Shown: positions 3,979 to 58,451 of the stretch, in pieces | How the letters are laid out: every line of letters begins with the position of its first letter | How positions within the stretch are numbered: the first letter of the stretch is position 1 | Sequence record: NC_023568.1 | Direction: 5' to 3' (one strand) | Length of the DNA: 64,000 bases | The notes under the pieces: generated by a model | What the model saw: only the letters and a program-made list of their open reading frames with translations | What the model was told of the DNA's origin: nothing | The model's database searches: none | Translations under genes and position numbers: made by a program

Positions 3979-3979
3979 C

Positions 3980-6468: not shown

Positions 6469-6472
6469 TTGA

Positions 6473-7600: not shown

Positions 7601-7619
7601 TACGTTTCCTTTTTAAGAG

Positions 7620-7640
7620 AGGGCAGTGAAACACTGCCCT
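7620..7640. terminator. Hairpin AGGGCAGTG-AAA-CACTGCCCT
   Basis: Perfect 9-bp stem, followed by only a short T run on +. Confidence 0.5.
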
Positions 7641-7649
7641 TTGTGGTTA

Positions 7650-8525
7650 TTATTTGATTGGTGTTTGTACTGCGATATCATCAAGCATTTTCGTTGGTAC
7701 GAACACTTTGTTATTCGACTTCGCAAGTTCACGTAGAGTTTTTTGCTCTTCGATGAATCGTACGTTAGAGTTCATCAGCTTGTCAGCTACTAGCTTTTTA
7801 GTTTCAGCTTCGTACAGTTCGATTTCACGCTGACGCTTTGACACTTCTTCACGAGTTGTGATTTGTAGCAAGTCTAGCTTACGTTGTGCTTTAACTGTGT
7901 CTTCTTCTTGACGACGTTCAGCAGATTTGATTTGTGCGTCTGTGATTGTCTTAGGGTAATCTACGTTAGTAACACCCACGACTTTAAGAACGAACGGCGT
8001 ATCTTTCAGCTCTTGATTCAAGCGATTAAGAACGAACGAGTTCAGTTTTTGACGTTCAGATGCAACCTGTTTGATGCTGTATTCAGCTACAATACTAGGT
8101 ACAATCGTATTCAGTTTAGCTTTCGCATAACGTTTAAACACGTCTTTCTGATCAATTACACCTAGCTGATCTGTCTGTGCTCGGAACGGTACTTTAGCGA
8201 ATACGAAGTTGTACTTCGCAGGGTCAATCGCCATCGTCATTTCGACTGAGTAAGCAAGCATAAGCTCATCTTTTGGCATGAACGTGTTGAAGTTCATTTG
8301 GTAGAAGCTGTCAGATACGTCAAGAAGTACTAGACGATCTGGGTAGCGCCATGCCCAATCGAGACGAAATTTAGACGGTTGTCGCGGCTCTGCTTCTAAA
8401 TTGAAGCCATTAGGCGTTTGAATCTTACCGACGAAACCCGTTGGGATTTCAGCAGGTGTGCCACAGCCTACAAGTGCTAGACCTAGCGCAGATACTGATA
8501 ATAGTTTTGCAAGTTTCTTAAACAT
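7650..8525 (-). CDS. SPFH/band-7 domain lipoprotein
   Basis: Signal peptide with lipobox LALVGC, EIPTGFVGKI, FVLKVVGVTNVDYPKTI, and a C-terminal coiled coil ending NNKVFVP. Confidence 0.8.
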   Translation of the reverse strand: MFKKLAKLLSVSALGLALVGCGTPAEIPTGFVGKIQTPNGFNLEAEPRQPSKFRLDWAWRYPDRLVLLDVSDSFYQMNFNTFMPKDELMLAYSVEMTMAIDPAKYNFVFAKVPFRAQTDQLGVIDQKDVFKRYAKAKLNTIVPSIVAEYSIKQVASERQKLNSFVLNRLNQELKDTPFVLKVVGVTNVDYPKTITDAQIKSAERRQEEDTVKAQRKLDLLQITTREEVSKRQREIELYEAETKKLVADKLMNSNVRFIEEQKTLRELAKSNNKVFVPTKMLDDIAVQTPIK

Positions 8526-8599
8526 GTTTTGCTCTCTTAGTTAATGAAGTTAATATCACAATCTATTTTGTTTGTGCGCTTCGTTGCGCTGAGGAGTAC

Positions 8600-8628
8600 A
8601 TAATAGGTAAATAAGATATGCCTGTCAA
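8600..8628 (-). promoter_or_regulatory. Sigma70-type early promoter for the SPFH operon
   Basis: TTGACA-17 bp-TATTAT on the - strand. Confidence 0.8.
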
Positions 8629-8636
8629 CACTTTTC

Positions 8637-8644
8637 TATAAATA
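8637..8644 (+). promoter_or_regulatory. Late promoter for gp25
   Basis: Exact TATAAATA 23 nt upstream of the ATG. Confidence 0.85.
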
Positions 8645-8667
8645 AATTTAAAATCGGAGAAAAAACT

Positions 8668-9087
8668 ATGGCAATTGCAGAGTTGAACACGTTAAAGCCA
8701 GGGAGTTTCTATTTCAGTGACATCCCTGCAAACTTTAATAAAAGTGTTGTAAACAATGACTTGAGCGCATCGTATGACTTAAAAGCAATACAAGAATCTA
8801 TCGTAGGTATCGTGAGTACGAATAAAGGAGAACGACCGTTCAACCCTGAATTCGGCTGTGACATTAACAATCAATTGTTTGAGAATATTTCTCCAGCAAG
8901 CGCGTTCTCAATTAAATATAGTATTGAAAACGCAATTTCAAGATGGGAACCTCGTGTTGCTATTCAGCGAATTGATGTCATCCCTGTATATGATGAAAAC
9001 ACGTATGACGTGTCTATACAGTATCACTTAAAAACTAACTTCGATAGATTGTTTGCCTTGTCAACTAGACTAGTAAATCGTCTATAA
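8668..9087 (+). CDS. gp25: Baseplate wedge gp25
   Basis: FYFSDI, AIQESIVGIVSTNKGERPFNPEFGC and ISRWEPRV. Confidence 0.95.
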   Translation: MAIAELNTLKPGSFYFSDIPANFNKSVVNNDLSASYDLKAIQESIVGIVSTNKGERPFNPEFGCDINNQLFENISPASAFSIKYSIENAISRWEPRVAIQRIDVIPVYDENTYDVSIQYHLKTNFDRLFALSTRLVNRL

Positions 9088-9092
9088 ACGAT

Positions 9093-9118
9093 AGCCCGCT
9101 CATTGAGTGGGCTTTTTT
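9093..9118 (+). terminator. Intrinsic terminator after gp25
   Basis: AGCCCGCTC-ATT-GAGTGGGCT followed by a T run. Confidence 0.8.
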
Positions 9119-19604: not shown

Positions 19605-21142
19605 TGTCAGGAACAAACATATTCACGCACGCTAGTGATGCAGCGCAATATGTTTACCTACAGCCCTTCACATCGCCTGGTTCAGCGTTTGAGTCAGGCG
19701 GTGATGTGCAGAGTATAATGGAGCTATTTGACGATAGCGCATTAGCACCACTTCCGTCACTTCCGTATGCGACAACGACTGAGGCTGGTATTGTTGAGTA
19801 CGCAACTCAAACAGAAGCTAATGCACTTGACGACTTATTAACTGTAATCACACCAGCGTCACTAGACGGGGTTGATCAGTTCGTGTCACCAGCAACCAGT
19901 ACTCAGTTAGGTAATCTACAAGAATTGCGTAATACTGATTTGACAAGAACATATTCGTCATCAGATGCAAGTCGTTTGCTGTCATATCGCCGTCTAAATG
20001 AAATGATGACGACTCGTAATGCACTAGCAGATGACACAACAAACGAATCACAAGGTTTTGCTGAGTTTGCAAATCTAAGCGAAACTTTAGCATATAACCC
20101 TGATCGATTCATTTCTCCACTTAGAACGTGGAACTTAATTAAAGCAGAGATACCAAACCCTTGGGCTCAAGCGACAGAAACATACACGGGCGTGCTTCGT
20201 ACTGTAGCAGAACGAGACGGGTATAAATCAGACGGTTCGATTGCAATTACAGTTAAAGGTCTTAATTACGTTAAAGCGACGACATCTAAGCGTGGTGCAT
20301 TCAAATTAACACAGAACAACTATGACCGTAATGCAAGCGATTCAGATGAATATGCTATAACTCCCGGTACAATTGACAATCTAATAGCGACACCGACTAA
20401 GCACGGGTTCTTTGAACTACCAAGCTCGTATGTAAACGACTCAACGAAAGCCACAAGTGCTGCACTTGGTGTTGATTTGAATACACTATTGGGCCCAGAC
20501 GGTGGTACAATTACTGGTGTTTTGAAGTGCGACAACATTTACACAAACATCATTTCTCGTCAAAAGCAGAGCAGCTATGGTGGAACATATTACACAACTG
20601 TGCGAGAGCAGAGAGAAATGTTCCCAAACAACCAATTAGACGCGAAGATCGGTCTCGAAGGGCGCCCTGTGGGTAGTATTTTTCACTGTACTTCATCAGT
20701 TGACCCGAATGAGATTTTCGGTGGCGTATGGTATAAGATGAGAGCAGGTCGAACTATGATGGGGCAGGGTATCGGTGATGATGGGTTCACTCGCAGATAT
20801 TACGCAGCGGGTTCGTTCAGTGACATCGACCGTGTTCAGTTATACGAGAGTAATTTACCACAACACCAACACGCAGGTTGGGGTGAAGCATATACAGGCT
20901 CACGCGAGGGGTGTATTCGCTACGAAACTCATCGAAGCCCGTATGGTGTAACATATACGTGTGATGAATATAATACTGTCAGTTACTGGAGATTCGGTAT
21001 AACAGGTTCGCGTAATAATCCCGGTTCGAAATCTACTGATCGTGATAATTACATGTATTACAACGAAGCAGTTGGTGGTAATGAGCCGCATGAGAATATG
21101 ATGCCATACTACCCAGTTTACATTTGGAGACGAGTTAAATGA
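19604..21142 (+). CDS. gp12: Short tail fibre gp12, paralogue 1
   Basis: N-terminus resembles gp12; ATTTEAGIVEYATQ repeats; collar PVGSIF; HQH metal motif; PHENMMPYYPVYIWRR. Confidence 0.85.
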   Translation: MSGTNIFTHASDAAQYVYLQPFTSPGSAFESGGDVQSIMELFDDSALAPLPSLPYATTTEAGIVEYATQTEANALDDLLTVITPASLDGVDQFVSPATSTQLGNLQELRNTDLTRTYSSSDASRLLSYRRLNEMMTTRNALADDTTNESQGFAEFANLSETLAYNPDRFISPLRTWNLIKAEIPNPWAQATETYTGVLRTVAERDGYKSDGSIAITVKGLNYVKATTSKRGAFKLTQNNYDRNASDSDEYAITPGTIDNLIATPTKHGFFELPSSYVNDSTKATSAALGVDLNTLLGPDGGTITGVLKCDNIYTNIISRQKQSSYGGTYYTTVREQREMFPNNQLDAKIGLEGRPVGSIFHCTSSVDPNEIFGGVWYKMRAGRTMMGQGIGDDGFTRRYYAAGSFSDIDRVQLYESNLPQHQHAGWGEAYTGSREGCIRYETHRSPYGVTYTCDEYNTVSYWRFGITGSRNNPGSKSTDRDNYMYYNEAVGGNEPHENMMPYYPVYIWRRVK

Positions 21143-22566
21143 GCAAAGGAACTCAAATTTTCAATCACGTGATTGACGATGCGGGTACGGTTACAGTTGA
21201 AGTCGAAGGTACTTCCTTTGATGGTCTTACTGGGGGTAATAACGATCTCCAAACGTGTCTTGAGCTTGTACAAGCTCATGCACTTCAACCATTACCCGAT
21301 TACCCTATAGCATCAACATCTGTCGCGGGTATTACATTGTTAAGTGATAATGCAGCAGTCGCAGATGAGCTTAATAACACAAGCGCGGTGACACCATCTG
21401 CATTAAATTATTGGATGGAAAATCACGCGACTGCAACAGAACTTCAATACGGTTTTGTGAAGCTGATTACAAACAGCACGATTGATAACATTGACCCGAC
21501 AGCCGCAGTAGAAGAAGCACAGAAACATGCATTCACGCTTAAAACATTGAACTACGCGTTGAATACTCGTTTCTATGCAACTGAATCTTCGCCGGGTGCT
21601 GTACGGCTAGCGACATATGCACAAGCAACGACAACAGGCACATTGTCTAATAGTGTGGCTATGACCCCACAGCGAGTTAAGGAAATGCTTGACGTGTGGG
21701 CGAATACTACCGCATCAGATGCTACAGAAACGACGAAAGGGTTGATTCGATTAGCAAATGCAACTGAAGTAAACAGCACATCAGCATCAGAAAACAATCT
21801 AGCAATTTCACCGTATCGATTCAATGAACGCACAGCGACAACTACGAGAAAGGCAGGTTTCTATCTACCGAACTCAACAGTTGCAAATGCGCGTACATCT
21901 AATGACCATGCAGTCACAGTCGGTACATTAGATTTATTCACTGCGACTAGCTCACGTGTTGGTGTTGCGAAACTTGCAAACAATCTAACAACAAACGACG
22001 CGACTCAAGCACTAAGTGCTGCAATGGGTTATAAGTTGAATAATGAAAAGATTGGGGTTTCAGGCGGGACAGTAACTGGTACATTGAAAATTGACGATGT
22101 TCAATCTGTAAGTGGTACTCAGTTAATGACGAATGGTCTGATTGAATCATCAGCCATGTTGAATATGTACCCTGTTGGTGCTATTTACATGTCACTTGAA
22201 TCTACATCACCAGCTACGCTATTCGGCGGGACATGGTCTAGAATTGCAGAAGGTCGTGTGCTTGTATCTGAAGGTACACATGGTGGTAGAACATTCAACG
22301 TAAGACAAACAGGTGGTGAATACGAAGTTATCTTAACTGAAGAAACAATGCCAACTCACAAACACGCGGGTTGGGGTGATCGTTGGACTTACGGTGGCAA
22401 CGGACTAGGGTTTGGAGTTGCATACGAATATGGTAGAAGCAACCCAGGTTCAGGTCGCACTGATAATGACAACTACTTGTATTACTCATCACCAGAAGGT
22501 GGTGGTCAACCACATAATAACGTACAGCCGTACTATACTGTTTACATGTGGGAAAGAACTGCATAA
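21139..22566 (+). CDS. gp12: Short tail fibre gp12, paralogue 2
   Basis: ATETTKGLIRLAN repeats; MYPVGAIYMS collar; HKH motif; PHNNVQPYYTVYMWERTA. Confidence 0.85.
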   Translation: MSKGTQIFNHVIDDAGTVTVEVEGTSFDGLTGGNNDLQTCLELVQAHALQPLPDYPIASTSVAGITLLSDNAAVADELNNTSAVTPSALNYWMENHATATELQYGFVKLITNSTIDNIDPTAAVEEAQKHAFTLKTLNYALNTRFYATESSPGAVRLATYAQATTTGTLSNSVAMTPQRVKEMLDVWANTTASDATETTKGLIRLANATEVNSTSASENNLAISPYRFNERTATTTRKAGFYLPNSTVANARTSNDHAVTVGTLDLFTATSSRVGVAKLANNLTTNDATQALSAAMGYKLNNEKIGVSGGTVTGTLKIDDVQSVSGTQLMTNGLIESSAMLNMYPVGAIYMSLESTSPATLFGGTWSRIAEGRVLVSEGTHGGRTFNVRQTGGEYEVILTEETMPTHKHAGWGDRWTYGGNGLGFGVAYEYGRSNPGSGRTDNDNYLYYSSPEGGGQPHNNVQPYYTVYMWERTA

Positions 22567-22606: not shown

Positions 22607-22634
22607 GGGTGAGATTGATTTCTCACCCTTTTTT
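22607..22634 (+). terminator. Intrinsic terminator after the gp12 pair
   Basis: GGGTGAGA-TTGATT-TCTCACCC-TTTTTT. Confidence 0.85.
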
Positions 22635-22658: not shown

Positions 22659-22737
22659 AAGAGGCGGAAAAATTCCGTCTCATCTTAGTAGTATTAGTGG
22701 TTTTAGTGAAGTTAGGGATATTAGTATGATTAGTATT
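22659..22737 (+). repeat. Hairpin plus six TTAG units at 9-bp spacing (copy A); inverted repeat of 48690-48764
   Basis: 22659-22709 equals the reverse complement of 48714-48764 at 50/51 nt. TTAG starts at 22685, 22694, 22703, 22712, 22721, 22730. Confidence 0.92.
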
Positions 22738-22816
22738 AAATACGTGTTTAAAACCATGAATATGCTTGCTATTATTAAACACATAAAGACATTCCCTCTC
22801 TGTTTCTTTGTATTGC

Positions 22817-22824
22817 TATAAATA
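22817..22824 (+). promoter_or_regulatory. Late promoter for wac
   Basis: Exact TATAAATA. Confidence 0.85.
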
Positions 22825-22863: not shown

Positions 22864-24546
22864 ATGACAATTCAAAAGCCTATCATTGAAGAGCTTAGAT
22901 ATGTAAATGGTCAACCAGATCCTTCTCAACGTCCCGATCAGACTCGAATCAATTGGGCTAAGAACGGTGAAAGCATTAACGGTGCTTCTGGTGACACGAC
23001 TTCAGACGGTGTATTAAACCGCGCAGGAGTACAGATTCAAGAAAACGTTCTAAACTCTCATTACAACACAAAAGCACAGCAAAGCGCAATTGAAGAACTT
23101 GTTGATACTGTTAACGAACTGACAGGTGGCGGTGACGCTAACTTAGGTTCTCGTGTGTCACAAAACGAGTTTGATATTGATGTACTTGAAGGTCAAATGA
23201 CTAACGTCATTGATGACATCGGTGTACCGAGTAGCGTTGACGTACTTGCAACAGGTCTGCATAAAGGCATCGAAGATGTTGAAGCAGATATTGGTGTTCG
23301 TAACAGCCTAGATATTCCAAACGAAGTTGAAAACAACGATACAGTTCGTAAAGATCTATATTTCATCAAGCGTCGTATTGGTAATGACCGTAACTACGAT
23401 GTCAACGGCAACCCATCGCCTAGTACAAACCCAACTGGTATGAAATATCAGATTGAAGATCTGTACAACAAAACAGCCACGATCAACGCTGAAATTGGCG
23501 AGAACGCAATCCCGCTTTCAATCAACGGTCGTTTATACGAACTAGAGCAAAACTCGCAAGTTGGTTCTGTTGATCAGATTCGTGATGAACTAGGTGAAAC
23601 GGCAGATGCCGACCCTGCTCGTCCCGTGTATCTTCGTCTTGATGATGCTGAAAGTTCTATTTCAGACAATGCATCAGATATTGCATTATTACAACAGGAA
23701 GTTGAAACGCCGACTACCGGTCTACTTGATCGCGTTAGCGCGAATGAAGTTACAATTGCAGATAATCAGTCACAGATTGGCTCCGTTACTAATTTATTTA
23801 TTGAAATGTCAACTGATATCGGTTCATACGCAGTAGATGACGTGTACTCGGGTAGCATGAAAGCTCGTCTATCGACGTTTAACGACGATATCAATAGATT
23901 GTGGGGTCGTTTAGGGGCTACTGACGCAGAAACTGGCACAGTGTCTTACAGAGTGTCACAGCTTGAGTCTAGTCTAGGTGAGCGTACAAACCCTGTTGAA
24001 TTTACTGCATGGTACACGATTCAAGAAAACCGTGGCTTAGTTGAATCTGCTCAGGCAGACGTTGACGGTCTATTGACTGTAGTTGGTCAGAGTGATAGCG
24101 AAGTGGGTACATTGCGTGCTCGTGTTCTGGAACTTGAAGCACAGTTGGATCATGCATTATTGTCTTCGGATACTCCGAGTACAGTTGATTTGACAACTAC
24201 ACCTACAGATGTATTCAGTTTATTCAATCTTGAGACAGACGTGAGTGGTTACACGTATGCAGGTGGTGTATTGACACGTAACGGTCTATCATTGAGCAAA
24301 ACGATGTCTATTCATTGGGTTGTTGTTTCACCAGTAAACACTACAATCACGATTCGAATTGATTTCGATCATGATAACGGCACAAGCTCATCAATCGAGA
24401 AAACACGTACGCTTCGTGCAAACCAAGTTACTCCAGTTACAATCACTAACGTTGCGAATCTAGATGACTTGAGTGAGATTCGAGTATTGGCTAGTACAGC
24501 GGCTAATGTTACTATCGACCATGAATCATTTGTACTAAAAGTATAA
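22864..24546 (+). CDS. wac: Fibritin (whisker)
   Basis: LRYVNGQPDPSQ..RINWAKNGE..GAS..DGVLNRAGVQIQEN N-terminus, then a long segmented coiled coil. Confidence 0.92.
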   Translation: MTIQKPIIEELRYVNGQPDPSQRPDQTRINWAKNGESINGASGDTTSDGVLNRAGVQIQENVLNSHYNTKAQQSAIEELVDTVNELTGGGDANLGSRVSQNEFDIDVLEGQMTNVIDDIGVPSSVDVLATGLHKGIEDVEADIGVRNSLDIPNEVENNDTVRKDLYFIKRRIGNDRNYDVNGNPSPSTNPTGMKYQIEDLYNKTATINAEIGENAIPLSINGRLYELEQNSQVGSVDQIRDELGETADADPARPVYLRLDDAESSISDNASDIALLQQEVETPTTGLLDRVSANEVTIADNQSQIGSVTNLFIEMSTDIGSYAVDDVYSGSMKARLSTFNDDINRLWGRLGATDAETGTVSYRVSQLESSLGERTNPVEFTAWYTIQENRGLVESAQADVDGLLTVVGQSDSEVGTLRARVLELEAQLDHALLSSDTPSTVDLTTTPTDVFSLFNLETDVSGYTYAGGVLTRNGLSLSKTMSIHWVVVSPVNTTITIRIDFDHDNGTSSSIEKTRTLRANQVTPVTITNVANLDDLSEIRVLASTAANVTIDHESFVLKV

Positions 24547-27452: not shown

Positions 27453-28001
27453 ATGCCTATCGTAACAGGTGATTTAAGATTTAATAAAAGTCTGCACGTA
27501 GTTGCGGCTTCGCCGGGAAACGGCAACACAAACGATCAAGAAGTTGATTCACTGGGTGGTGGTATCAGTGCTACCGAGCTAGTTTCAGGTCAAGTTCATG
27601 ATCTTTTCGATGCGGTACCTTCATCTGAAGCTTCTTCAGGTCGTGTTGAGTATCGCTTAATTTACGTCAAAAATAACCACCCATCGCTAACTTTGTATGA
27701 TGCAATGGTGTATATGTCTGCCAATACAGCATCGGCAGATTCTACTATCGAGCTAGGTCTAGACCCAGTGGCGCTTAACGGCGTTGATTCGCTTATTACT
27801 CTAGATGACGAAGTTGATTCGGGTACTGAATTGTCAACAGTTATATTCGGTGAACATTCGACATTCGAATCTGGGCTTGATATCGGTAATTTAGCAGCAG
27901 GCGAATATCGAGCAATTTGGGTTAGACGTACTATCAATGCAGGTGCAGCGGCAGCATTAGAAACTGCAACTATTACTGTTCGTGGAGACACTGACGCTTA
28001 A
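27453..28001 (+). CDS. Hypothetical late (probably virion) protein, beta-rich
   Basis: Strong RBS GGAGAG; LGGGIS, HDLFDAV, EYRLIYVKN, GNLAAGEYRAIWVRRT resemble a widespread phage structural family (from memory). Confidence 0.8.
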   Translation: MPIVTGDLRFNKSLHVVAASPGNGNTNDQEVDSLGGGISATELVSGQVHDLFDAVPSSEASSGRVEYRLIYVKNNHPSLTLYDAMVYMSANTASADSTIELGLDPVALNGVDSLITLDDEVDSGTELSTVIFGEHSTFESGLDIGNLAAGEYRAIWVRRTINAGAAAALETATITVRGDTDA

Positions 28002-34807: not shown

Positions 34808-35299
34808 ATGAAGTTCATTTCCGAAGCCGTTCAAGAGAAAATCGTCGAAGATTTGGTAGAAGCAGTTCTTGGTGGTCAGTTAGATCGCCAAGATATCAGC
34901 GACACTATCAAAGCGTTTGCTGAAGCTGAAGATATCGGCGTTCACAGCAATAAAGACATCACGAACGAAGTTGAAGTTGTACTTGACGTGCTAAGTTCTC
35001 TTGAAGACGGGTTATCAATCGATGAAGCGTGTGAAAAATTCGAACTTTCCGAAAAGCTAGTTAAGCAAGTTTCTATTGCTAACAAAAAAGCTGGCGGTAG
35101 TTTAATTACGAAGCGCAAAGACCGAAAAACCAGAGCGCGAAAAGCGACTCAAACAACTGGTCTAAGTAAATCGAAGAGACAAAAAACAGCGCGAAAAGCG
35201 GCTAAAACACGCAAGCGTATGAAAGGCACTAGTGCAGATCGTAAAGCAAAAAAATTGCGTAAGAAGTCGATGAAGAAGCGTCAACAAATGGGGCTTTAA
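34808..35299 (+). CDS. gp68: Prohead core protein gp68
   Basis: Acidic N-terminal half and highly basic C-terminus (RARKATQTTGLSKSKRQKTARKAAKTRK). Confidence 0.9.
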   Translation: MKFISEAVQEKIVEDLVEAVLGGQLDRQDISDTIKAFAEAEDIGVHSNKDITNEVEVVLDVLSSLEDGLSIDEACEKFELSEKLVKQVSIANKKAGGSLITKRKDRKTRARKATQTTGLSKSKRQKTARKAAKTRKRMKGTSADRKAKKLRKKSMKKRQQMGL

Positions 35300-35301
35300 T
35301 T

Positions 35302-35943
35302 ATGGAATTACAACTCTTAATTGAAGACTGGGGTTTATCTAGCGGTTGCGCTGATAGCTTCGGTGAAAAGCCTCTTGTTGAAGCGAAAATGCCCACGGAA
35401 AAGGGCGGTGACTTGTACATCGAAGGTATTTTCATGCAATCGAATGTCGTAAACCGTAATGGTCGTCGATACCCGAAAAAAGTCATGGAAAATGCTGTAT
35501 CTAAATACATGAAAGAACAAGTCAACACGAATCAAGCGTTGGGCGAGCTTAATCACCCAAGTCGTTCAAACGTTGACCCCGCTGAAGCTGCGATTCGAAT
35601 TACTGAGTTGTGGTGGGACGGCGATAACGTAATGGGTAAAGCTATCGTACTAAATACACCGAAGGGACAAATAGTTCGAGGTCTGATCGAAGGTGGTTGG
35701 GTACCGGGCGTGAGTTCAAGAGGTCTTGGTTCAGTTAAGCAAGTTGACGGCATCAACGAAGTGCAAGATTTCCGTCTTACAGTAGGCGTTGATGTAGTGT
35801 GGGGTCCTAGTGCACCTGCTGCTTACGTTAAACCAGTAACTGAGTCAAATGAAGCTGCTAAGTCAGTAAAAACAGAAGAAATTACAGAAAGTAATGACGC
35901 TGAATTTGCGAAACTAGCGGAAACGTTAAAAACTCTCTTATAA
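35302..35943 (+). CDS. gp21: Prohead protease
   Basis: LYIEGIFMQSNVVNRNGRRYP, GELNHP, GVSSRGLGS and DVVWGPSAP. Confidence 0.97.
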   Translation: MELQLLIEDWGLSSGCADSFGEKPLVEAKMPTEKGGDLYIEGIFMQSNVVNRNGRRYPKKVMENAVSKYMKEQVNTNQALGELNHPSRSNVDPAEAAIRITELWWDGDNVMGKAIVLNTPKGQIVRGLIEGGWVPGVSSRGLGSVKQVDGINEVQDFRLTVGVDVVWGPSAPAAYVKPVTESNEAAKSVKTEEITESNDAEFAKLAETLKTLL

Positions 35944-35946
35944 ATA
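35939..35946 (+). promoter_or_regulatory. Late promoter for gp22
   Basis: Exact TATAAATA. Confidence 0.8.
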
Positions 35947-35975
35947 TATAAAACATATTTAAGGAATTGAAGAAG

Positions 35976-36824
35976 ATGCAAATCAAAGAGCAACTACTTG
36001 AAGCTGTATCGCAAGACGATGCAAAAATCACTACTGCTTTGGATGGCATTTTTGAATCAGTTGAACTTTCCGAAGATGTTCGTAATAAGTTCAGCACTGT
36101 TTTCGAAAGTGTAATCAAAACTAAAGCCGTTGAGCTTGCTGAAGCACATATCGCTGAAGCTGCTGAAAAGGCAGAAGCAGTAATCAACGAACACAAAGCA
36201 GAGCTTGATGAAGCCGCTGAAAAATACGGTGAACATCTAGCAGAGCAAATGTCGAATAAACTAGATTCATATCTAGACCACGTTGTTGAAACATGGATGA
36301 CTGAAAACAAACTAGCTGTTGAAAACGGTCTAAAAGTTTCAATGTTCGACGGGTTGATGGAAGGCATGAAGAATGTATTCATTGAGAACAACGTTCACTG
36401 CCCAGACGAGAAGATCGATATGATCGAAGCTCTTGAAGAAAACATTCAAGATCTTGAAGGTCGTCTAGATACAGTTGTTATCGAGAACCGTCAACACAAA
36501 GAATACGCTAACTACGTAGAAAAAAATATCATCATCGAGCGCGTGACTGCTGGTATGGCTGACTCTCAAAAAGAGAAAGTTTCTGACCTAGCTGAATCAA
36601 TTCGCTTCGACGAGAACTTTGAAGACAATCTAAATAGTGTTATCAAGTTCGCATCAGGCATCAAACTTGCTGAAAAAGAAGATATGCCAAGTGATGACGA
36701 CAAAAAACCGGCTGATAAAAAAGACGGTGAAGACGACGCTGACAAGAAAGACGACAAAGATATGAAAGAATCCGCAGTACCATCTATGGCTGCATACTTG
36801 AAAGCTGCTCGTACTAATCGATAA
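35976..36824 (+). CDS. gp22: Prohead scaffold
   Basis: FESVELSEDVRNKFSTVFES, YLDHVVETWMTENKLAVENG and MAAYLKAA. Start at ATG 35976. Confidence 0.95.
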   Translation: MQIKEQLLEAVSQDDAKITTALDGIFESVELSEDVRNKFSTVFESVIKTKAVELAEAHIAEAAEKAEAVINEHKAELDEAAEKYGEHLAEQMSNKLDSYLDHVVETWMTENKLAVENGLKVSMFDGLMEGMKNVFIENNVHCPDEKIDMIEALEENIQDLEGRLDTVVIENRQHKEYANYVEKNIIIERVTAGMADSQKEKVSDLAESIRFDENFEDNLNSVIKFASGIKLAEKEDMPSDDDKKPADKKDGEDDADKKDDKDMKESAVPSMAAYLKAARTNR

Positions 36825-47651: not shown

Positions 47652-47815
47652 TAGTCTAACCCCTTTTTTATAAGTGATTGGTAGAGATAAAACCCATCGA
47701 CTTGTAAAGAGCCATGAAGTTCCCATCCCTCGTTAAGTAGTTTCTGCACTTCCTCTTCAAAAGTTCTTGAATTATTGCCATGCACTACTTTGTATTTAAT
47801 GTAATCAGTCTGCAT
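47651..47815 (-). CDS. 54-aa hypothetical protein (DUF1737-like)
   Basis: Hand translation MQTDYIKYKVVHGNNSRTFEEEVQKLLNEGWELHGSLQVDGFYLYQSLIKKGLD; stop overlaps the next ATG. Confidence 0.7.
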   Translation of the reverse strand: MQTDYIKYKVVHGNNSRTFEEEVQKLLNEGWELHGSLQVDGFYLYQSLIKKGLD

Positions 47816-47816
47816 A

Positions 47817-48230
47817 TTACAGACCGATTGCTAGTTTGAACAACTGAGACGCTTTACCACCATCGAAAACTTTACCTGTAGCTTTTAGAGCGCCCATTAG
47901 TTTACCCATGTCACGCATAGAATCAGCACCAGTTTCTAGAACAAAGTTAGAAACGAACGTGTCTAGATCTGATTCAGAGATTTTTGCAGGTAGTAGAGAC
48001 TCAAGAACTGCGTTTTCTGCGTTCAGAATGTCTACATGATCGCCTTGTGCGTGTTCAAGAGCAAGTTTGTTGTTGTCAATCGCGCTTGAGATTACTTTGA
48101 TGCAAGACTCGTCATCGTGTTTTTGACGACGGTCAAGTTCACCCATAATGACACCGAGTACAGACGCAACTGCGTTGTTACGGTCTTTACGAGCTTGTAG
48201 GCGTGTTGTTTTAATTGTTTCGATGATCAT
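47817..48230 (-). CDS. GatB/YqeY domain protein
   Basis: ARKDRN..VLGVIMGEL, ENAVLESLLPAKISE, SMRDMGKLMGALK and DGGKAS. Confidence 0.88.
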   Translation of the reverse strand: MIIETIKTTRLQARKDRNNAVASVLGVIMGELDRRQKHDDESCIKVISSAIDNNKLALEHAQGDHVDILNAENAVLESLLPAKISESDLDTFVSNFVLETGADSMRDMGKLMGALKATGKVFDGGKASQLFKLAIGL

Positions 48231-48640
48231 ACTATACCACTCTCAATTTTTCTGTTGTCAATAATGTGTTTGATTGTGAAGCCCATTTGACTAATGCCTT
48301 TCAAAGCTTCTTCGATGAATGATAACACATCTTTCATGTGTTGAAAAGTAGCAATTGCACGTTGAAGATATTCATCACCCGCAAGAGCATATTTCATTTC
48401 ACTCTTTTCTACGATGAAATCACAAACTTCATCGTCATGTTTGCCGCTATAAAAGAGCCAGCGGTCTTTTCTCACAGCTTCCATTTTCATTTCAGCTTTG
48501 ATAAGTAGTTGTCTTGCATCGGCTCGGTATGCAAGCCACTTCGCATGAAGAACGGGAATTCGAATAGCTGCTGTTTCTAAAGCAGTTGTGTCAATTTTCA
48601 CGTCTTCGTGATATTCAATTTTTAAATCTTGTAGCTTCAT
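48227..48640 (-). CDS. uvsY: Recombination mediator UvsY
   Basis: DVKIDTTALETAAIRIPVLHAKWL, WLFYSGK and GFTIKHIIDNRKIESG. Confidence 0.93.
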   Translation of the reverse strand: MKLQDLKIEYHEDVKIDTTALETAAIRIPVLHAKWLAYRADARQLLIKAEMKMEAVRKDRWLFYSGKHDDEVCDFIVEKSEMKYALAGDEYLQRAIATFQHMKDVLSFIEEALKGISQMGFTIKHIIDNRKIESGIV

Positions 48641-48689
48641 AATAACCTCGCGTCATCAAGTATACATTTCATCATTGGTGGCTTAAACA

Positions 48690-48764
48690 CTAATCCCTCT
48701 AATACTTCTAATATCACTAAAAGCACTAATACTACTAAGATGAGACGGAATTTTTCCGCCTCTT
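48690..48764 (-). repeat. Hairpin plus six TTAG units at 9-bp spacing (copy B)
   Basis: CTAA on + at 48690, 48699, 48708, 48717, 48726, 48735; core identical to copy A except one base. Confidence 0.92.
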
Positions 48765-48785
48765 ACCGTTTTTCGCTTCGCGTAT

Positions 48786-48804
48786 AAAAAAAGCCCCGAA
48801 GGGC
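48786..48804 (-). terminator. Terminator after gp35
   Basis: On -: GCCC-TTCG-GGGC-T7. Confidence 0.85.
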
Positions 48805-48808
48805 TCTT

Positions 48809-51502
48809 TTATTTCATTGCAAAGTCGATTGCAGTGAAATTGTCTTCAAACGAACTAGCAACATTGACTTCAGTGACAATTGGGAAAGCCCACATTACTT
48901 GATTTTCAACGGCTGTTTCATCTTTGTATCGAAGTATCAACTTATCATCATCAGCATTCCATCTAAAAGACTTGTCTGCGTTTGTGGTGTAATAACCTAC
49001 ACCCTTTGATGTCTGATATGTCGGATCATCTTCTGGGTTTATTACACCGAAATAGTTGTTAAACTTATCAGCAAACGCTTGATGTTGTGCATCTGTCCAA
49101 TCATGTGGTAGAATATACCCCTGCAATAAAACCCATTGATTGTTTGAAGCAGGAAACCCGTACACTCTGTCAACATTGATATATGTAGATGTTCGACTAC
49201 CGTCTGATAATCTCAGAGTTCTATAGTCACCAGATGAATTCTTGACACGTACACTGAAATATAAGAAGCTATTTTGCTTGTCTATAGCATTAACCCATAA
49301 CGATAAGAAGTATGGTCGAGATGGATCGATTGATACTTCTTGCATTTCAATTGGAGATGATGAGCCTGCTGTACGTGTGAAACACTTTTCACCGCCTGAA
49401 AGTACATAATTACCCCATTGAACGTTGTCAATTTCTTGTACTGGCATATTAATACCTGCATACAAGTTTGAATCTGCGTTATATGCTCGCCACCAGCTAT
49501 CGTCATCAACTACGTTACCTGTAATCGGTGAATTGACAATCTCTTGAGCAGCGATACCGTTTATGTTCGAAATCATATGAGGTATACCACTCGGGGTTGA
49601 CATTCCGCCTTTAGTCAATATGACGTAATCAAAGTACTCTGGTTGTAAGTCAGACCAAACTCCAAATTTAACTGCACCTGTTGGTACTTGTACGAAAAAT
49701 TCTTGAGTTTCTTTTTTCTCTGCACTGTAAAAATGAATATTCTGTCTGCCTACTTCATCGCCAACTACGTTGTAGAATCGAAGATTCGCCATTTTGTCTG
49801 CATTCGCGATTGCTGAATTTCGATCAATACATGCACGAGCTTTGTAAATCAAGTACTGTCCGTCGATTACACCATAATCTGAAAGAAGATAACGTTTATC
49901 AGTAGGAACAGTCATTGTTTCGAGTAAAGGAATTCCGTACCCGTTTGAACCAATCCCTTCTTTATCTTCGAATGCAGTATCAACAACACTGTCACCGTCA
50001 GATTCATGATCGAACATACAACGATCATATACAATACCTAATTGGCCTGTCCCGAATGCACAGTAACTATAACTGTATTGACTGAAGTAAGAGCTACCGC
50101 GATACTCAATCGGGTGATACTGTTGAATTGCAGCATCTACCGCAGAATCTGCGTACATTGACCCATTTGATAGAATAACAAACGGCTCTGTTGTTAACCC
50201 GTTCAGCCCGTTGATGAAGTTGCTACGTTCTGTAGAACTACTCAGAAGATATTTTCTATTAGTTTTGACTGTCATATCGTCGTTGAATATAATCAAACGA
50301 ACTTGATATTGTTGTTTAGCTTCGGGTGTGAATAGACTAACATCATTCAAATAACATGATGCTAGATTCGAACTACCGTTCGCGACACCTGTTGCTAACA
50401 GTCTGATATTATTATTTGAAAAATCTCTGATATGTCTAGCCGACACTTCATATTCACCGATTCTTGAACCGACGGGAGCATAAATCCATAATTCTGCTAT
50501 ATTTACGTTAATACCCGGTCCCGGGAATGTCGTAGTCGCGTCTGGCCAAGAACGTTTGGCACCGATAGCCCAATACCAATTTGATATATCGACTGAACCA
50601 TCTGCTAAAGTACTAGCTGAAACGCTGAATTCAATACCACCCCAATCGTTTGCAGTGCTTTCGATGTAAACAGGTTCATAACCCCTAACCCCACGAGCGG
50701 TAGCATCGTAATCGCCAGTATAGTTCTTGACGATTTGCGAATCCGTGATCATGAAGTTCGTCAACCAACGTTTTCCTGTTGGTAATTTCCCGGCATCGTT
50801 TGTGTAGCAACAATACCAGTACATGCTACTTGACGAAAGAGTACTAGGCGTTGTGAAACGAGCATAGTGACGTTTCCAAAGAATCCCGTCAACTATTATT
50901 TCGTTTCCTGCTGATTCGAACACGTCACCCGCAGTATGTTCGCCTAATGTATAATCATTATTGGAACCGTCATACCAACGAGCGTGAAATATAGCTGCTG
51001 TGTCGTGATCAGCGTCTACTTCATACCCAACCCAACATGACAATGTGTATGTTTTGTTTGGTTTTAAACGCGATTGTGGCACTTGAAATCGCAATTGATC
51101 TTCGAGTGCCGCAGTTGGTTGTTCTACAACGTATTTTGACGACCCTGGGTTTTCTTTTTCAACTATAACCCACGAACCTATTTTTGCGTTTTGCTCAGTA
51201 ACGTATTCGCCACCAGCCAAGTTACCGTTAGTTAGATATTGACCTACATCAATAGCTGCAAAGTTACTACTTTGCTTCCAAATGTTTGTTACATCTAATT
51301 CTGGGTAATGAAGCTTGAATTGGAATTTGCCGTCTTCACGGCGAAATTCCTCAAGTGAGTTCAACGCACTGAATTTTTGTTCAACGTCGGGATTTGTCCC
51401 GACGCTGCGTGCTTCAGCATCGGAGGTGAAAAACACACCTCCTGTTGAATCATGGCGAAAGATTAATAGCCAATCGCCGTCACGTTTAAGTCTTTCGTAC
51501 AT
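48809..51502 (-). CDS. gp35: Long tail fibre hinge gp35-like, with N-terminal lectin-like domains
   Basis: Follows gp34. Region from aa ~350 resembles the T4 gp35 domain (VRLIIF..KY..SNFINGL..VILSNG..YSYCAF..DTAFEDKEGIGSNGY). Confidence 0.7.
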   Translation of the reverse strand: MYERLKRDGDWLLIFRHDSTGGVFFTSDAEARSVGTNPDVEQKFSALNSLEEFRREDGKFQFKLHYPELDVTNIWKQSSNFAAIDVGQYLTNGNLAGGEYVTEQNAKIGSWVIVEKENPGSSKYVVEQPTAALEDQLRFQVPQSRLKPNKTYTLSCWVGYEVDADHDTAAIFHARWYDGSNNDYTLGEHTAGDVFESAGNEIIVDGILWKRHYARFTTPSTLSSSSMYWYCCYTNDAGKLPTGKRWLTNFMITDSQIVKNYTGDYDATARGVRGYEPVYIESTANDWGGIEFSVSASTLADGSVDISNWYWAIGAKRSWPDATTTFPGPGINVNIAELWIYAPVGSRIGEYEVSARHIRDFSNNNIRLLATGVANGSSNLASCYLNDVSLFTPEAKQQYQVRLIIFNDDMTVKTNRKYLLSSSTERSNFINGLNGLTTEPFVILSNGSMYADSAVDAAIQQYHPIEYRGSSYFSQYSYSYCAFGTGQLGIVYDRCMFDHESDGDSVVDTAFEDKEGIGSNGYGIPLLETMTVPTDKRYLLSDYGVIDGQYLIYKARACIDRNSAIANADKMANLRFYNVVGDEVGRQNIHFYSAEKKETQEFFVQVPTGAVKFGVWSDLQPEYFDYVILTKGGMSTPSGIPHMISNINGIAAQEIVNSPITGNVVDDDSWWRAYNADSNLYAGINMPVQEIDNVQWGNYVLSGGEKCFTRTAGSSSPIEMQEVSIDPSRPYFLSLWVNAIDKQNSFLYFSVRVKNSSGDYRTLRLSDGSRTSTYINVDRVYGFPASNNQWVLLQGYILPHDWTDAQHQAFADKFNNYFGVINPEDDPTYQTSKGVGYYTTNADKSFRWNADDDKLILRYKDETAVENQVMWAFPIVTEVNVASSFEDNFTAIDFAMK

Positions 51503-51510
51503 AAATCACC

Positions 51511-54500
51511 TTATATAGCGTGTCCGTACGTAAACTCCAACACGCCTTGATTATTAGTTGACATTCTTACAGAACCAACTTGAATGTAGTCTCTGTATTT
51601 AACGCTCTCACCTGTACCACCGTCTGGCGTGAACAAGTCGATACGCTCAGATAGTGTCTTACCAGCACCAGCCGATAGAGCTTGGTGTGGGTCTGAAGCA
51701 TTCACTGGGTCTGCTGTACGCACGTCACTTGTTACTTGTACAATACCTGAATTCGTGCGGCTTGATTTGCGCAGACGATCATTGTTAATTGTACCAGTTG
51801 TGATGTTCTCACCTGAGTGAGCGTGACTATAATCGTTAACTTGAATGTTTGAAGTAACGTTTCCGCTACCATCTAACGTAAAGTTACCAGATAAGTCGCC
51901 AGTGAACGTCACTGTGCGCGCTGTAACCCACTTCTCAGAAGCTTTAGCTACGTTGTTAATACCCAAGTACTTGTTACGAAGTGAACCGCTTGCAGGGCTT
52001 GAATAAGTCCCGTACGATGAATCAACGTTTGCAGTCGCTTCATTTTCATATACGGTATCACCGAACGATGCCCCACCTGGCTGAGCCGTATAGCCAGTTG
52101 AATTTACTTGCCAGCGAGTTGAATCGCCTGTACCTACGATTAAGAAGGGTGCAGAAGACCCTTCACCACCGCCACCAACACGAATGCGAGCTTCGTCATT
52201 TAACCAGTCGAGTTTTACACTTGCCGAATCGTTATTTGGGTTCTCAACGATGAAGTAACCACCATTTTTTGCAAGAACTATATGATTGTCAAACTTATAT
52301 GACGCATTGATTGTTTGATCAACGTCACGACGTGCAAATTGTGTACTGTTCAAGCCATCTAGTAATTCTGAGTCATCAGCTTTAGCGTTTAGTGGCAAGT
52401 AGTTACGCAATGCATAGTGCAACCCGTAAGGTGAAACTGCATATGGAACACGCAAGTACGACGTATACGCTTGTGTTGAACCGTCTGTACTGTTACCAAC
52501 AAATGTTTCTGCTGGTGTTGCGATTTGTACGTTACCATAACGACTTTCATTTGCACGTGAGCTGTCAGAGTAACGAGTCCAGTGTAGCAAATCACTCGGA
52601 GTAACAACAATTTCATTACTAGCTGTCGCTGCTTCGACTTCAGCTTGAGTCGCAAGACGCACGATACCGGTTTGCGTTTCAGTAGCACGACGCGCATTTA
52701 ACTTCTGTGGTGTGATGATTACATCATCAAGCGCACCAGTTTGAGCATTCGCTTCTACTTGAGTCGCAACTTGTAGTGTACCACGTTGTGTTTCAGTCGC
52801 TGACGCGATGCTGAATGTAACGTCGCCCCACACTGTACCAGTATGCGATAGACCATCTGTTCCTGCCGTCACGAAATGGTCACGATCAAGCCATGTCTTC
52901 AGTTTAAGTGGTGAAACAATACGAGTATCGTCTGTCCCTGAGTCAACTTCAGTTTGAGTCGCGATTTCAGCAACACCACGACGTGATTCAGTTGCTGTTC
53001 TGCTATTCAACGTTTCTGGTGTGATGAAGACTGTTGTCCACGATTCACCAGTTCCTGTTGTTGCATTTGCTTCAGACTGTGTAGCAGAACGAGCAATACC
53101 ACGAACCGTTGAGCTTGCTTTCCACGCTGCTAATTTCTTAGGCGTGATGATCGCGTTATCAACTGTTGAGTCGTTGATGCGAAGTTCACTGCTCTTAGCA
53201 ACCCATAATGTACCAGGTTGATTCTCTGTAGCGCGATACTCATCAAGCATTTTAGGCGTTACTATACGCAGATGATCAGTTTTATCATATACTGTATTGT
53301 CAAGACCATTTACTGAACGGTCTGAGCGCATATTCGCTGTTGATGTAACAATACCACCAGCATTGATGTTGTTCGACGCTTCGACTAGTTTTGCAACACC
53401 TGTTAGATCTTCTTCAGCTTGTGCAGCGTGGAATTTCATCGGTGTTAGAACTTGAACATCGTTAGTTGTGCTTCGCGTCTCGTTTTGAGTTGCGATTTCA
53501 ACTACACCGCGACGTGTTTCAGTTGCTGTACGCGCATTCAAACTACGTGGTGTTATGAACAGATCATGTCTGAAGTTTGTATCTGGGTAACGAACAAACG
53601 TACCAGAACGCGATTCTTCAAGTGCTTCATCAGTTCCAAGTGTAGCAACACGAGCCATACCAACTTGCTGTTCACCTGCACGACGAGCGTCAAGCGTCTC
53701 TACCGTGATTACGTGGTCTTTCAGTGGGTTTTGATCAGCCCAAGGGTCTGCTGCATCTTCAGGGTGCGCATATTCAATCCCGTGTGCTAGAGCTTCCGTT
53801 GGGTCAGCTAATGGCACGATACCCGGGCGTTTACGGTATAGTTCATCAGCGATATCGATACGAGTCGCGATGTTACCGAACGACCATACTTTACGACTCG
53901 CGTCGTAGTATAGAACTAGTGAATAACCGCTGTCATAATCACTAATTTCGAATGATTCAACGAAGAATGGAACGAAATCAACGTAATGACGGTATTTTTG
54001 ATAACGATATGTTTCAAAGTCCAAGAATACTTTGTATTCATCGGGGCCGTGACCTGGGTCATCATCACCGAAATTCGGGTGAACTTGAATCGTTACTTTC
54101 TTATGAGCTGTTTTGTTGTGTGAGATCTCAATCCAGTCACCATCGGCTGGTTTTTCTGGTAGTGTGATCGTCATTGCAGGAACAGCATCTGCGATTTCGA
54201 TAGCGTAACGAGAACGAGGCTTCAATTCAACCGCGCTTGAATCCCCGACATAGTTCCATAAATGCGGGTTGTTCGCGATTGTGATTACCCATACGCCAGT
54301 ACCGTTATCATCGATAAATGTGATATCAGCGCCGCCGATAGTATCAAGACTGATAACAGAACTACGTTCGCCTGAAATAGGGTCTTGAATAACCTGACCC
54401 GTAGCAGTCGGGTTCACACCGATTTGAATCGACGTTTGATTCTCAAGATACGCAACATCTTTAAGATGAATTGTATCGCCCACGTTCGGGTTCAGTGGTA

Positions 54501-56593: not shown

Positions 56594-56879
56594 AGACAAC
56601 TACGTTTTAAAAGAAGAGCTTGGTGATTTAGTTCCGCCTATTAAAGGCAGTCTTAGACAGCAAATCTCTCTAGAAATTGAAGAGATTTATAATAGCTGTC
56701 CCGCCATGACCTATCTTGAAGCGTGTCTGTTCTTCATTGAGCAATACGATTACGACATTAGTCGCTTCCCGTATCTGATTAATCAGACGTTGAAAGACAA
56801 AATTGAGACTGAGGCGATAAATGAAAAGACTATTAGAAGTCGATTTGGTTCTGCCTCGGACTTGGGTCAATGGGTATAG
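56571..56879 (+). CDS. gp33: Late transcription coactivator
   Basis: SLEIEEIY..TYLEAC..FIE..LKDKIETEAINEK. Confidence 0.88.
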   Translation: MTMQMMNKDNYVLKEELGDLVPPIKGSLRQQISLEIEEIYNSCPAMTYLEACLFFIEQYDYDISRFPYLINQTLKDKIETEAINEKTIRSRFGSASDLGQWV

Positions 56880-57474
56880 CGTATTTCGTGTTTATTGTGC
56901 TGTAAAGGCGCATATGGGCGGAAAGTACGACATCTCCAAGTATAAACTCGGAATGAAAACACCTAGATCTGCGTTCGAGAAGCGTTCAGATAAGGTGTTT
57001 TTTGAACGGCTAGCCAAACGGCTAACATTGAATGATTGCTATCAGTTGCTTGTTAGTAACTTAGCAGCGAACCCCAATGCGATTTCTTATGAGATTGCAG
57101 GTGCTGACGCTCATGAATTCTGGTTGAAACATACGGGATTTATGGAAATTTACAGTCAACACTACAAAAATGAACTACTTTCGATTTTTACTCTTATAAA
57201 TAGAGAGAATAAAAAATTCAAAGATTTGTTTAGAGGCGAAGGGCATCCCGTTATAATGCAACTCGTGTTACGAAATACTATCTCAATTGAGACGTTCGTA
57301 ATTCTGAATAGATTATTGAACTTCGTACCTGTAATCGACAAAGATTACGGAGACGATATCTTCTGGCACGAGTTCAAGACACGAGCTTTAGCATACGATA
57401 AGTTGCTGAAAATCGACGAAGTTCTTGCTAAAGAAATGTTTATTCAAATAAAAAATCAAAGTAAAATACAATAA
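56821..57474 (+). CDS. gp59: Helicase loader
   Basis: NGYSVFRVY..KAHMGGKYDISKY, FEKRSDKVFFERLA and ISIETFVIL. Confidence 0.93.
   Translation: MKRLLEVDLVLPRTWVNGYSVFRVYCAVKAHMGGKYDISKYKLGMKTPRSAFEKRSDKVFFERLAKRLTLNDCYQLLVSNLAANPNAISYEIAGADAHEFWLKHTGFMEIYSQHYKNELLSIFTLINRENKKFKDLFRGEGHPVIMQLVLRNTISIETFVILNRLLNFVPVIDKDYGDDIFWHEFKTRALAYDKLLKIDEVLAKEMFIQIKNQSKIQ
57195..57202 (+). promoter_or_regulatory. Late promoter inside gp59 serving gp32
   Basis: Exact TATAAATA about 320 nt upstream of gp32. Confidence 0.55.
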
Positions 57475-57524
57475 CACACTATACGATACTATATCATACT
57501 ATAAAATACAAGGTAAAATACAAT

Positions 57525-58451
57525 ATGTCTATGTTCAAACGCAAATCTCCAGCAAAACTTCAAGAAAAACTAGAGCAAATGTCAAGCAAAAAGTCATTCG
57601 ACAATGCTGACGAGTGGAAACTTTCTACTGACAAGCTTGGTAATGGTTCTGCGGTGATTCGCTTCCTGCCTGCTAAAGGCGAAGACGACCTACCATTTGT
57701 AAAAATCTTCACACACGGTTTCAAAGAAAACGGTAACTGGTACATCGAAAACTGTCCTTCGACTATCGATCTTCCATGTCCATGCTGCCAAGCTAACGGC
57801 GAGCTTTGGAAAACTGAAAACGAAGATAACCAAAACATTGCACGTAAACGCAAGCGTACTCTTTCTTACTGGGCTAACATCGTTGTAATCAAAGATGAAG
57901 CTGCACCAGAAAATGAAGGCAAAGTTTTCAAATACCGTTTCGGTAAGAAAATTCTTGACAAGATCACTCAAGCTGCTCAAGCAGATGAAGATCTAGGTGT
58001 ACCGGGCATGGACGTGACTTGTGTATTCGACGGTGCTAACTTCAGCTTGAAAGCTAAGAAAGTATCTGGTTTCCCTAACTACGACGACTCTAAATTCGGC
58101 CCAAGCACTGAGCTATACGGCGGTGACGAAGCTAAACTGAAAGAAGTCTGGGACCAAATGCACGACCTAAACGCAATCATTGCACCGTCTGCGTTTAAAT
58201 CTGAAGCTGACCTTCAGAAGCGTTTTCTTCAAGTGACTGGCGCTGCTCAGTCTAAAGCATCTACGGCTGCTCAAAATCTTGAAGCTCAACTGAACACTGG
58301 TGCTCCTGCTCAAGCAAATGCACCTCGTACAGTTGCTAAACCAAGCGCAACTATCGACACTGACGACACTCCTGCTTCACAAGAGCCAGTGACTGATTCT
58401 GTCGATGACGAGCTAGACGCACTACTAGCTGACCTAGAGCTAGACGAGTAA
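57525..58451 (+). CDS. gp32: ssDNA-binding protein
   Basis: EWKLSTDKLGNGSAVIRFLP, HGFKENGNWYIENCPST, CPCC, YRFGKKILDKI and an acidic tail. Confidence 0.98.
   Translation: MSMFKRKSPAKLQEKLEQMSSKKSFDNADEWKLSTDKLGNGSAVIRFLPAKGEDDLPFVKIFTHGFKENGNWYIENCPSTIDLPCPCCQANGELWKTENEDNQNIARKRKRTLSYWANIVVIKDEAAPENEGKVFKYRFGKKILDKITQAAQADEDLGVPGMDVTCVFDGANFSLKAKKVSGFPNYDDSKFGPSTELYGGDEAKLKEVWDQMHDLNAIIAPSAFKSEADLQKRFLQVTGAAQSKASTAAQNLEAQLNTGAPAQANAPRTVAKPSATIDTDDTPASQEPVTDSVDDELDALLADLELDE

Follow-up and report, generated by a model that had tools for sequence, protein, structure and literature searches.

The gp35-uvsY intergenic region of Vibrio phage VH7D (NC_023568.1) carries a hairpin followed by phased TTAG repeats, and the question raised by this locus is whether they mark a replication origin, as an earlier note had proposed, or another kind of control element. 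VH7D belongs to the genus Schizotequatrovirus and is a KVP40-like, T4-type phage; KVP40-like phages are large marine and aquaculture phages and are widely studied. The window analyzed here is a 64,000-nucleotide stretch of the VH7D genome, in which positions 47800-51600 align at 100% identity to record positions 171800-175600, so that window coordinates equal record coordinates minus 124000, and for whole-genome scans it was joined to the rest of the genome (246,964 bp in total). Most of the window falls within ~110-186 kb of the RefSeq record, where almost no genes are annotated; uvsY, genes 34/35, gp12, wac, gp19, and the dNMP kinase gene are all without RefSeq annotation in VH7D. The element next to uvsY, termed copy B, belongs to a family of composite terminator-promoter cassettes with six members per genome, which seems specific to KVP40-like (Schizotequatrovirus) Vibrio phages. 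The parts of copy B and its neighbors are as follows.

48809..51502, minus strand: gp35-like long-tail-fiber hinge gene, 897 aa, the upstream neighbor (ORF; the KVP40 orthologue is annotated as gene 35)
48786..48806, minus strand: intrinsic terminator of gene 35, with an AGCCC/GGGCT stem, TTCG loop, and T-run (sequence and ssDNA/RNA folding)
48775..48781, minus strand: GCGAAGC mini-hairpin motif, ~44 nt upstream of the array
48742..48762, minus strand: main hairpin, 9-bp stem with one G.T/G.U pair and an AAA loop (sequence, ssDNA and RNA folding)
48685..48738, minus strand: array of six TTAG boxes with an exact 9-bp period (sequence, pattern scan, and TRF)
48738-48735, 48729-48726, and 48720-48717, minus strand: TTAG boxes 1-3
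48711-48708, 48702-48699, and 48693-48690, minus strand: TTAG boxes 4-6
48659..48687, minus strand: sigma70-like early promoter TTTAAG-17-TATACT (8/12 matches, by eye)
48227..48640, minus strand: uvsY, 137 aa, with its ATG at 48640 (ORF; Pfam UvsY, E = 3.6e-50)

This is the order that had been noted on the minus strand, namely tail-fiber gene, terminator, hairpin, six 9-bp-spaced TTAG units, and downstream gene. The GCGAAGC of copy B folds with a 2-3 bp stem and a 3-nt loop, ATC separates the main hairpin from the first TTAG box, and TRF reports the period-9 array at 48688-48738. Folded as ssDNA, the region forms three hairpins and then an open array. The terminator hairpin of copy B was also flagged in the opposite orientation.

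The boxes are followed by GTGTTTAAGCCACCA, which contains the -35-like hexamer TTTAAG (48687-48682). The start of this hexamer lies 6 bp beyond the start of the last TTAG, and the -10 hexamer TATACT (48664-48659) lies 17 bp past it. The copy B promoter scores under the threshold of the scan tool, and the orthologous promoters at the uvsY site score 10/12 (TTTACA-17-TATACT in KVP40 and TTGATC-17-TATAAT in F86). The stretch earlier written as 'GTGTTTAA..CCA' corresponds to the -35 region of this sigma70-type promoter. An extended -10 was dropped for copy B, as TG directly abuts the hexamer. A Mot-box middle promoter was also rejected; there is no TGCTT-type box at -30, and a -35-like hexamer is found at 17 bp instead. 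Ahead of uvsY lies GAGG (48649-48646).

A second copy in the window, copy A, lies in the gp12-wac intergenic region on the opposite strand.

21139-22566, plus strand: gp12-like short tail fiber gene (PHROG 'tail collar fiber protein', E = 1.4e-114)
22607..22634, plus strand: terminator after the gp12-like gene, 8-bp stem and T-run
22661..22681, plus strand: main hairpin, identical to that of copy B (sequence and alignment)
22685..22738, plus strand: array of six TTAG boxes with a 9-bp period (pattern scan)
22747..22775, plus strand: sigma70-like promoter TTTAAA-17-TATTAT with a TG extension (9/12)
22864..24546, plus strand: wac (fibritin) (PHROG 'fibritin neck whisker', E = 2.2e-103)

The layout is common to copies A and B. 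Their units 1-3 are nearly the same and units 4-6 are different with the 9-bp phase retained, in agreement with what had been said of the distal units. The TTCG-loop terminator attributed to both copies is found in copy B; the terminator stem-loop of copy A is a different one. Within the window, TTAGN5TTAGN5TTAG occurs eight times, all in these two loci, as compared to 0.02 occurrences expected from shuffles, which excludes chance as the source of the arrays. The sequence TATAAATA at 22817-22824 (plus strand) is situated past the copy A sigma70-like promoter, 40 bp ahead of wac. We take it to be a T4-type late promoter, and with this assignment wac seems to be served by two promoters, one early-type and one late-type.

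Two copies had been implied by the earlier note. A scan of the whole VH7D genome found exactly six arrays of at least three phased TTAG boxes and no others, all of them co-oriented with the flanking genes, at the following sites.

between gp023 and gp024, then a DNA methyltransferase gene
between gp149 and the lipoprotein gene gp150
between the gp19 tail tube gene and the dNMP kinase gene (gp19/gene 1)
between gp12 and wac (copy A)
between gp35 and uvsY (copy B)
between a SprT-like gene and a glutaredoxin-like ORF, then gp24 and gp55

The same six sites are occupied in KVP40. F86, taken as the outgroup following PMC12028318, has five copies, each with exactly six boxes and each at a VH7D site, and only the lipoprotein copy is missing; the uvsY copy is present in 6E35.1a as well. 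By blastn, the element occurs in 51 records, all from Vibrio phages, at about six places in each. When IMG/VR, JGI metagenomes, and GTDB genomes were scanned for the pattern, KVP40 and VH7D were the sole true copies among the matches listed, and the others were chance matches or perfect 9-bp tandem repeats without the hairpin. T4 has no array ahead of uvsY, nor does it have a counterpart of site A, since its gene 12 overlaps wac; in Aeromonas phage P19, uvsY has no preceding intergenic space. Phage 1.081.O carries a tandem duplicate at the gp19/gene 1 site with 7 + 6 boxes (1480-1787 of fetched piece L128), each copy with its own GCGAAGC and hairpin. The glutaredoxin-like ORF encodes 79 aa (27599-27838 of fetched VH7D piece L005), and RefSeq gives only a 39-aa fragment of it.

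Gaps between neighboring copies in VH7D range from 26 to 56 kb. Compared with random placement, this spacing is even (in VH7D, P = 0.007 for a minimum gap of at least the observed size and P = 0.005 for a variance no greater than observed; 0.03 and 0.13, respectively, in F86), in a test that is post hoc and applied to syntenic sites, so that the two genomes are not independent.

A sigma70-type promoter lies 0-30 bp past the array at five of the six sites and is conserved among the phages. Besides the promoters of copies A and B, these include TTGACA-17-TACTAT at site 1 and TTTAGA-17-TATAAT at site 6. The -35 boxes are weak (TTTAAG, TTTAAA, and TTTAAT) at the sites whose array abuts the promoter. 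Measured from the start of the last box, the -35 lies 4-6, 17, or 20-31 bp away across sites and 27, 28, or 31 bp away among site 6 orthologues; the last box falls at about -40 in copies A and B and at site 4. An upstream terminator, 25-45 nt from the array, shields four or five of the sites, and at sites A, B, 4, and 6 the promoter is preceded, at a distance of 0-90 bp, by a terminator and/or hairpin. The lipoprotein copy is the exception. It has no promoter, and its array runs into a Shine-Dalgarno sequence (SD; AGGAG in unit 5) and a start codon at the array end in both VH7D and KVP40. As a side observation, no other copy is embedded in an mRNA leader. At this site the element's 5' part extends over the end of the upstream CDS (VH7D record 69358-69501; also KVP40), and a TTA-GNN-NNN frame runs from the upstream stop codon to a stop overlapping the lipoprotein start, an open frame that is probably due to chance.

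Sequence conservation was assessed with 20 copies from five phages. The TTAG boxes are intact in 117 of 120 cases, and not one indel occurs within the 54 bp. Among orthologues, box identity is 0.96-1.00 and the 5-bp spacers fall to ~0.57 in comparisons with F86, a contrast that indicates strong selection on the boxes as well as on how many there are and how they are phased. The near-invariant stretch extends from 5 bases before the array to the first base after the second box, with a sole variable column at unit 1 position 8 (A or T); unit 1 is TAGTA in 6/6 VH7D copies and TAGAA in most KVP40 and F86 copies. Paralogues have an identity of 0.74-0.84 in the proximal half and ~0.53 in the distal half. 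A coding reading of the repeats (TTA-GNN-NNN, a Leu-x-x peptide) was rejected on the grounds that the A of TTA is invariant, unlike a wobble position, and that the copy A array contains an in-frame stop.

Covariation in the main hairpin was evaluated with 19 distinct copies. In these, 85% of stem cells are paired, and the observed values were reached in 0 of 500 shuffles. Two pairs show compensatory changes (GG/CC to CC/GG), and several G.T/G.U pairs are valid on the sense strand only; fold energies average -9.4 kcal/mol on the sense strand and -7.9 kcal/mol on the antisense strand. A single event spread by conversion may account for the compensatory change, and the main hairpin is degenerate at the uvsY site in F86 and 6E35.1a. 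Together these suggest the hairpin is less essential than the array. The GCGAAGC motif lies at a fixed upstream distance in 4/6 VH7D copies. A search of Rfam 15 gave a best match of 26 bits against a gathering threshold of 60, with all matches at chance level.

The arrays are ~75% A+T, and the sense strand of the spacers is nearly C-free (A 261, T 192, G 133, and C 14). In VH7D each of them falls within the 0.03-0.6% of 54-bp duplex windows that are least stable genome-wide, with copy B within 0.6%. The hairpin segment upstream has above-average duplex stability, and downstream of the promoter stability is near the genome mean, which places the minimum in the array itself. An unstructured sense-RNA platform is unsupported, as the sense arrays fold like random 54-mers (-7.9 vs -8.5 kcal/mol); only the G-free antisense strand is unstructured on folding. 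A separate idea is that the G-containing, C-free arrays could be targets of 7-deazaguanine modification. VH7D carries a 7-deazaguanine gene set (QueC, QueE, and GTP cyclohydrolase; fetched pieces L002 ~5300-9100 and L003 ~35200-36100), and its relative nt-1 has only ~350 such modifications per million nucleotides (PMC6884629).

The order of parts in these cassettes matches that of the PeSL (promoter-early stem-loop), in which a stem-loop lies just upstream of a promoter and is accompanied by an AT-rich region, -35/-10 elements (N17), an SD, and a start codon (Comeau 2014, PMC4122927). PeSLs are multi-copy per genome and have been reported for nt-1/KVP40 (PMC4122927). The likeness includes the 17-bp spacer between -35 and -10, and an AT-rich tract followed by a promoter is found at all sites except the promoterless lipoprotein site; at copy B the GAGG and ATG of uvsY come next. 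PeSL cassettes of T4-like phages were reportedly also described by Arbiol in 2010. The present element differs from a PeSL in that its AT-rich region is an exact six-TTAG array of 9-bp period with a second conserved hairpin and in that only 5-6 copies are found per genome. PeSLs are found preferentially in hyperplastic regions beside indels or ORFans, whereas the present copies lie at conserved core positions outside such regions; five syntenic core sites (12/wac, 35/uvsY, 19/gene 1, SprT/glutaredoxin-24, and gp023/gp024) are shared by VH7D, KVP40, and F86. TTAG is not mentioned in the PeSL paper (PMC4122927).

We favor, tentatively and at a probability of roughly 40%, a reading in which the array is a fixed-stoichiometry protein-docking platform on DNA that controls the adjoining early promoter. 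From the contrast between boxes and spacers and the invariant count and phase we infer a sequence-specific factor of fixed stoichiometry. This predicted factor, probably phage-encoded, would bind the six sites as a hexamer or as three dimers, in a complex that would spiral around the DNA, since 9 bp is off the helical repeat. The upstream terminator would stop transcription from displacing the bound complex, which in turn would set the strength or timing of the promoter. On this reading a small set of genes would be co-controlled, consisting of uvsY, dNMP kinase, the block of glutaredoxin, gp24, and gp55, the wac region, and gp024 with the methyltransferase. Promoter control is ranked first because terminator, array, and promoter keep the same order, because the -35 boxes are weak next to an abutting array, and because of the PeSL precedent. 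An activator that touches the polymerase is an awkward fit given that the distance from array to -35 is not fixed. In searches of Pfam, PHROG, and PDB sequences, the flanking gp023, gp024, gp149, and SprT-like proteins had no DNA-binding domain. Ribbon-helix-helix arrays, such as those of TP228 ParG and pSM19035 omega, are likewise built of short direct boxes with AT-rich spacers at an off-helical period, and they abut or overlap the -35 of several promoters on one replicon. Box number varies in those systems and the binder is known and encoded nearby, whereas here the number is fixed at six and the binder is predicted. Also counting against promoter control are the lipoprotein copy without a promoter and the placement of two copies before genes that are late in T4 (wac and gp24). 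Plain promoter control also fails to predict the sense-only G.T/G.U pairs, the compensatory hairpin changes, the C-free strand, the extreme duplex instability, and the even genome spacing.

Several of these same features are compatible with the six hairpin and TTAG arrays being iteron-type replication origins or origin enhancers, an origin being the proposal of the earlier note. We regard this as unlikely and rank it second. Judged from sequence features, a hexameric or cooperative initiator would bind the boxes and the easily melted C-free tract would open, aided by negative supercoiling behind an RNA polymerase departing the adjoining promoter; the extruded GCGAAGC and 9-bp-stem hairpins would then mark a single-strand loading or priming site. 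In such a scheme the arrays would be a set of initiation sites of identical sequence and even spacing, coupled to the early promoters, and a predicted hexameric factor may read them in opened or single-stranded form. The T4 background of the proposal is sound, as oriF coincides with the uvsY promoter region, gene 34 contains oriG, and both have MotA-type middle promoters (PMC3016281, T4 record). Copy B occupies the place of oriF, in a uvsY promoter region after a co-directional late structural gene (gene 25 in T4), and a promoter is integral both here and in the T4 origins. The argument from position next to uvsY and genes 34/35 is weak nonetheless, because the five other copies lie elsewhere, at gp12/wac, gp19/gene 1, SprT-like/glutaredoxin-gp24, and two early-region sites. 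What does remain compatible with an origin is the presence of 5-6 copies at conserved sites, where T4 has at least five origins, several of them within late-gene regions as here (PMC3016281); the even spacing (P ~0.005-0.007 in VH7D and 0.03-0.13 in F86, subject to the post hoc choice of the statistic and the synteny of the genomes); the duplex instability, 0.03-0.6% by rank; the strand asymmetry, with a sense-strand spacer G:C of 133:14; the adjoining early promoter and absent Mot-box; and a hairpin that is more stable on the sense strand and has compensatory changes. An evenly spaced direct-repeat cluster at an easily unwound tract is found here, as at iteron-type origins. GCGNAGC mini-hairpins occur at phage ssDNA priming origins and ssiA, and also in N4 hairpin promoters (PMC13037366). 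T4 oriE likewise pairs an early promoter, on which it depends, with about six evenly spaced direct repeats (PMC3016281), which differ in being 12-mers of 24-bp period within the gene 5 coding sequence, as compared to 4-bp boxes at 9 bp in non-coding DNA at six loci. As an aside on T4, the gene 5 repeats (3903-4070 of fetched piece L410) adjoin the annotated oriE, and their coding position complicates a reading as protein-binding iterons. Against an origin of the T4 R-loop type, oriF and oriG have a Mot-box middle promoter with an unwinding element downstream of it (PMC3016281), whereas the cassettes have sigma70 -35/-10 elements, no Mot-box, and no A+T-rich unwinding element downstream; the easily melted tract lies upstream of the promoter. 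Moreover, the 9-bp period is off the helical repeat typical of iterons, T4 origins have no common motif (PMC3016281), and no initiator gene was found among the neighboring genes by Pfam, PHROG, and PDB sequence searches. In sum, instability, strand asymmetry, hairpins, even spacing, late-gene placement, and the uvsY site favor an origin, an unstable tract that lies upstream and the absence of an initiator among the neighbors weaken it, and ordinary promoter control with a PeSL terminator-promoter layout explains the cassette at least as well.

The hairpin and (UUAG N5)x6 might instead act at the RNA level, as the target of a ring-shaped or cooperative RNA-binding protein through which the downstream message would be controlled in its translation, stability, or processing. 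TRAP and HutP act in this way on NAG triplets at fixed spacing, with a repeat number that matches the ring oligomer and several targets per genome, and the UAG-containing box at fixed spacing is a likeness to them. An exact 9-nt period with exactly six units would suit a single strand wrapped on a hexamer, all copies lie on the sense strand, the hairpin has sense-only G.U pairs along with compensatory changes, and the lipoprotein copy places an SD (AGGAG, unit 5) and start codon at the array end. We nevertheless consider an RNA element improbable and rank it third, as terminators precede the array and promoters follow it. TRAP/HutP targets lie in transcribed leaders, which is the case here only at the lipoprotein site, the promoter being downstream of the array at 5/6 sites; with a strong terminator 25-45 nt upstream and a promoter downstream at 4-5 sites, the main transcript of uvsY and its counterparts would exclude the array. 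The sense arrays are also not unusually unstructured (mean -7.9 vs -8.5 kcal/mol for random 54-mers), and Rfam gave no match. Less probable still, and last of the four, is a PeSL-type cassette that requires no factor at all, its TTAG tract being an AT-rich or UP-like region that is homogenized by recombination (concerted evolution) and serves mainly as a substrate for modular shuffling. The PeSL definition fits such a cassette, paralogues share lineage-specific changes (TAGTA in unit 1 of VH7D vs TAGAA), their proximal halves are more alike than their distal halves, and phage 1.081.O has a tandem duplicate. Boxes that stay invariant as their spacers drift, a count that is always six, and the absence of any indel argue for sequence-specific reading in place of mere AT-richness, however; the array also occupies syntenic core positions, whereas PeSLs cluster in hyperplastic regions, and is found at only 5-6 of many early promoters. 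The probability left beyond these four readings is reserved for functions we have not thought of.

Elsewhere in the window, three ~11-nt A/U-rich units occupy 57461-57524 (plus strand), between gp59-like (56821-57474) and gp32-like (57525-58451) ORFs. Lying before the gp32-like start codon, they look like a putative gene-32-type autoregulatory translational operator, as judged from their sequence.

As an element of exact geometry held at 5-6 copies throughout a genus, the cassette is a candidate mark of either a small regulon or the origin set of a 250-kb genome, and in both cases it points to a missing protein partner. Origins in the T4 family share no motif and hence are not predictable from sequence in any T4 relative; were the origin reading true, the KVP40-like phages would offer the first case in the T4 family of multiple origins that share one recognizable motif. 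For PeSL-type cassettes, the array means that at least some of them carry more information than a terminator and a promoter.
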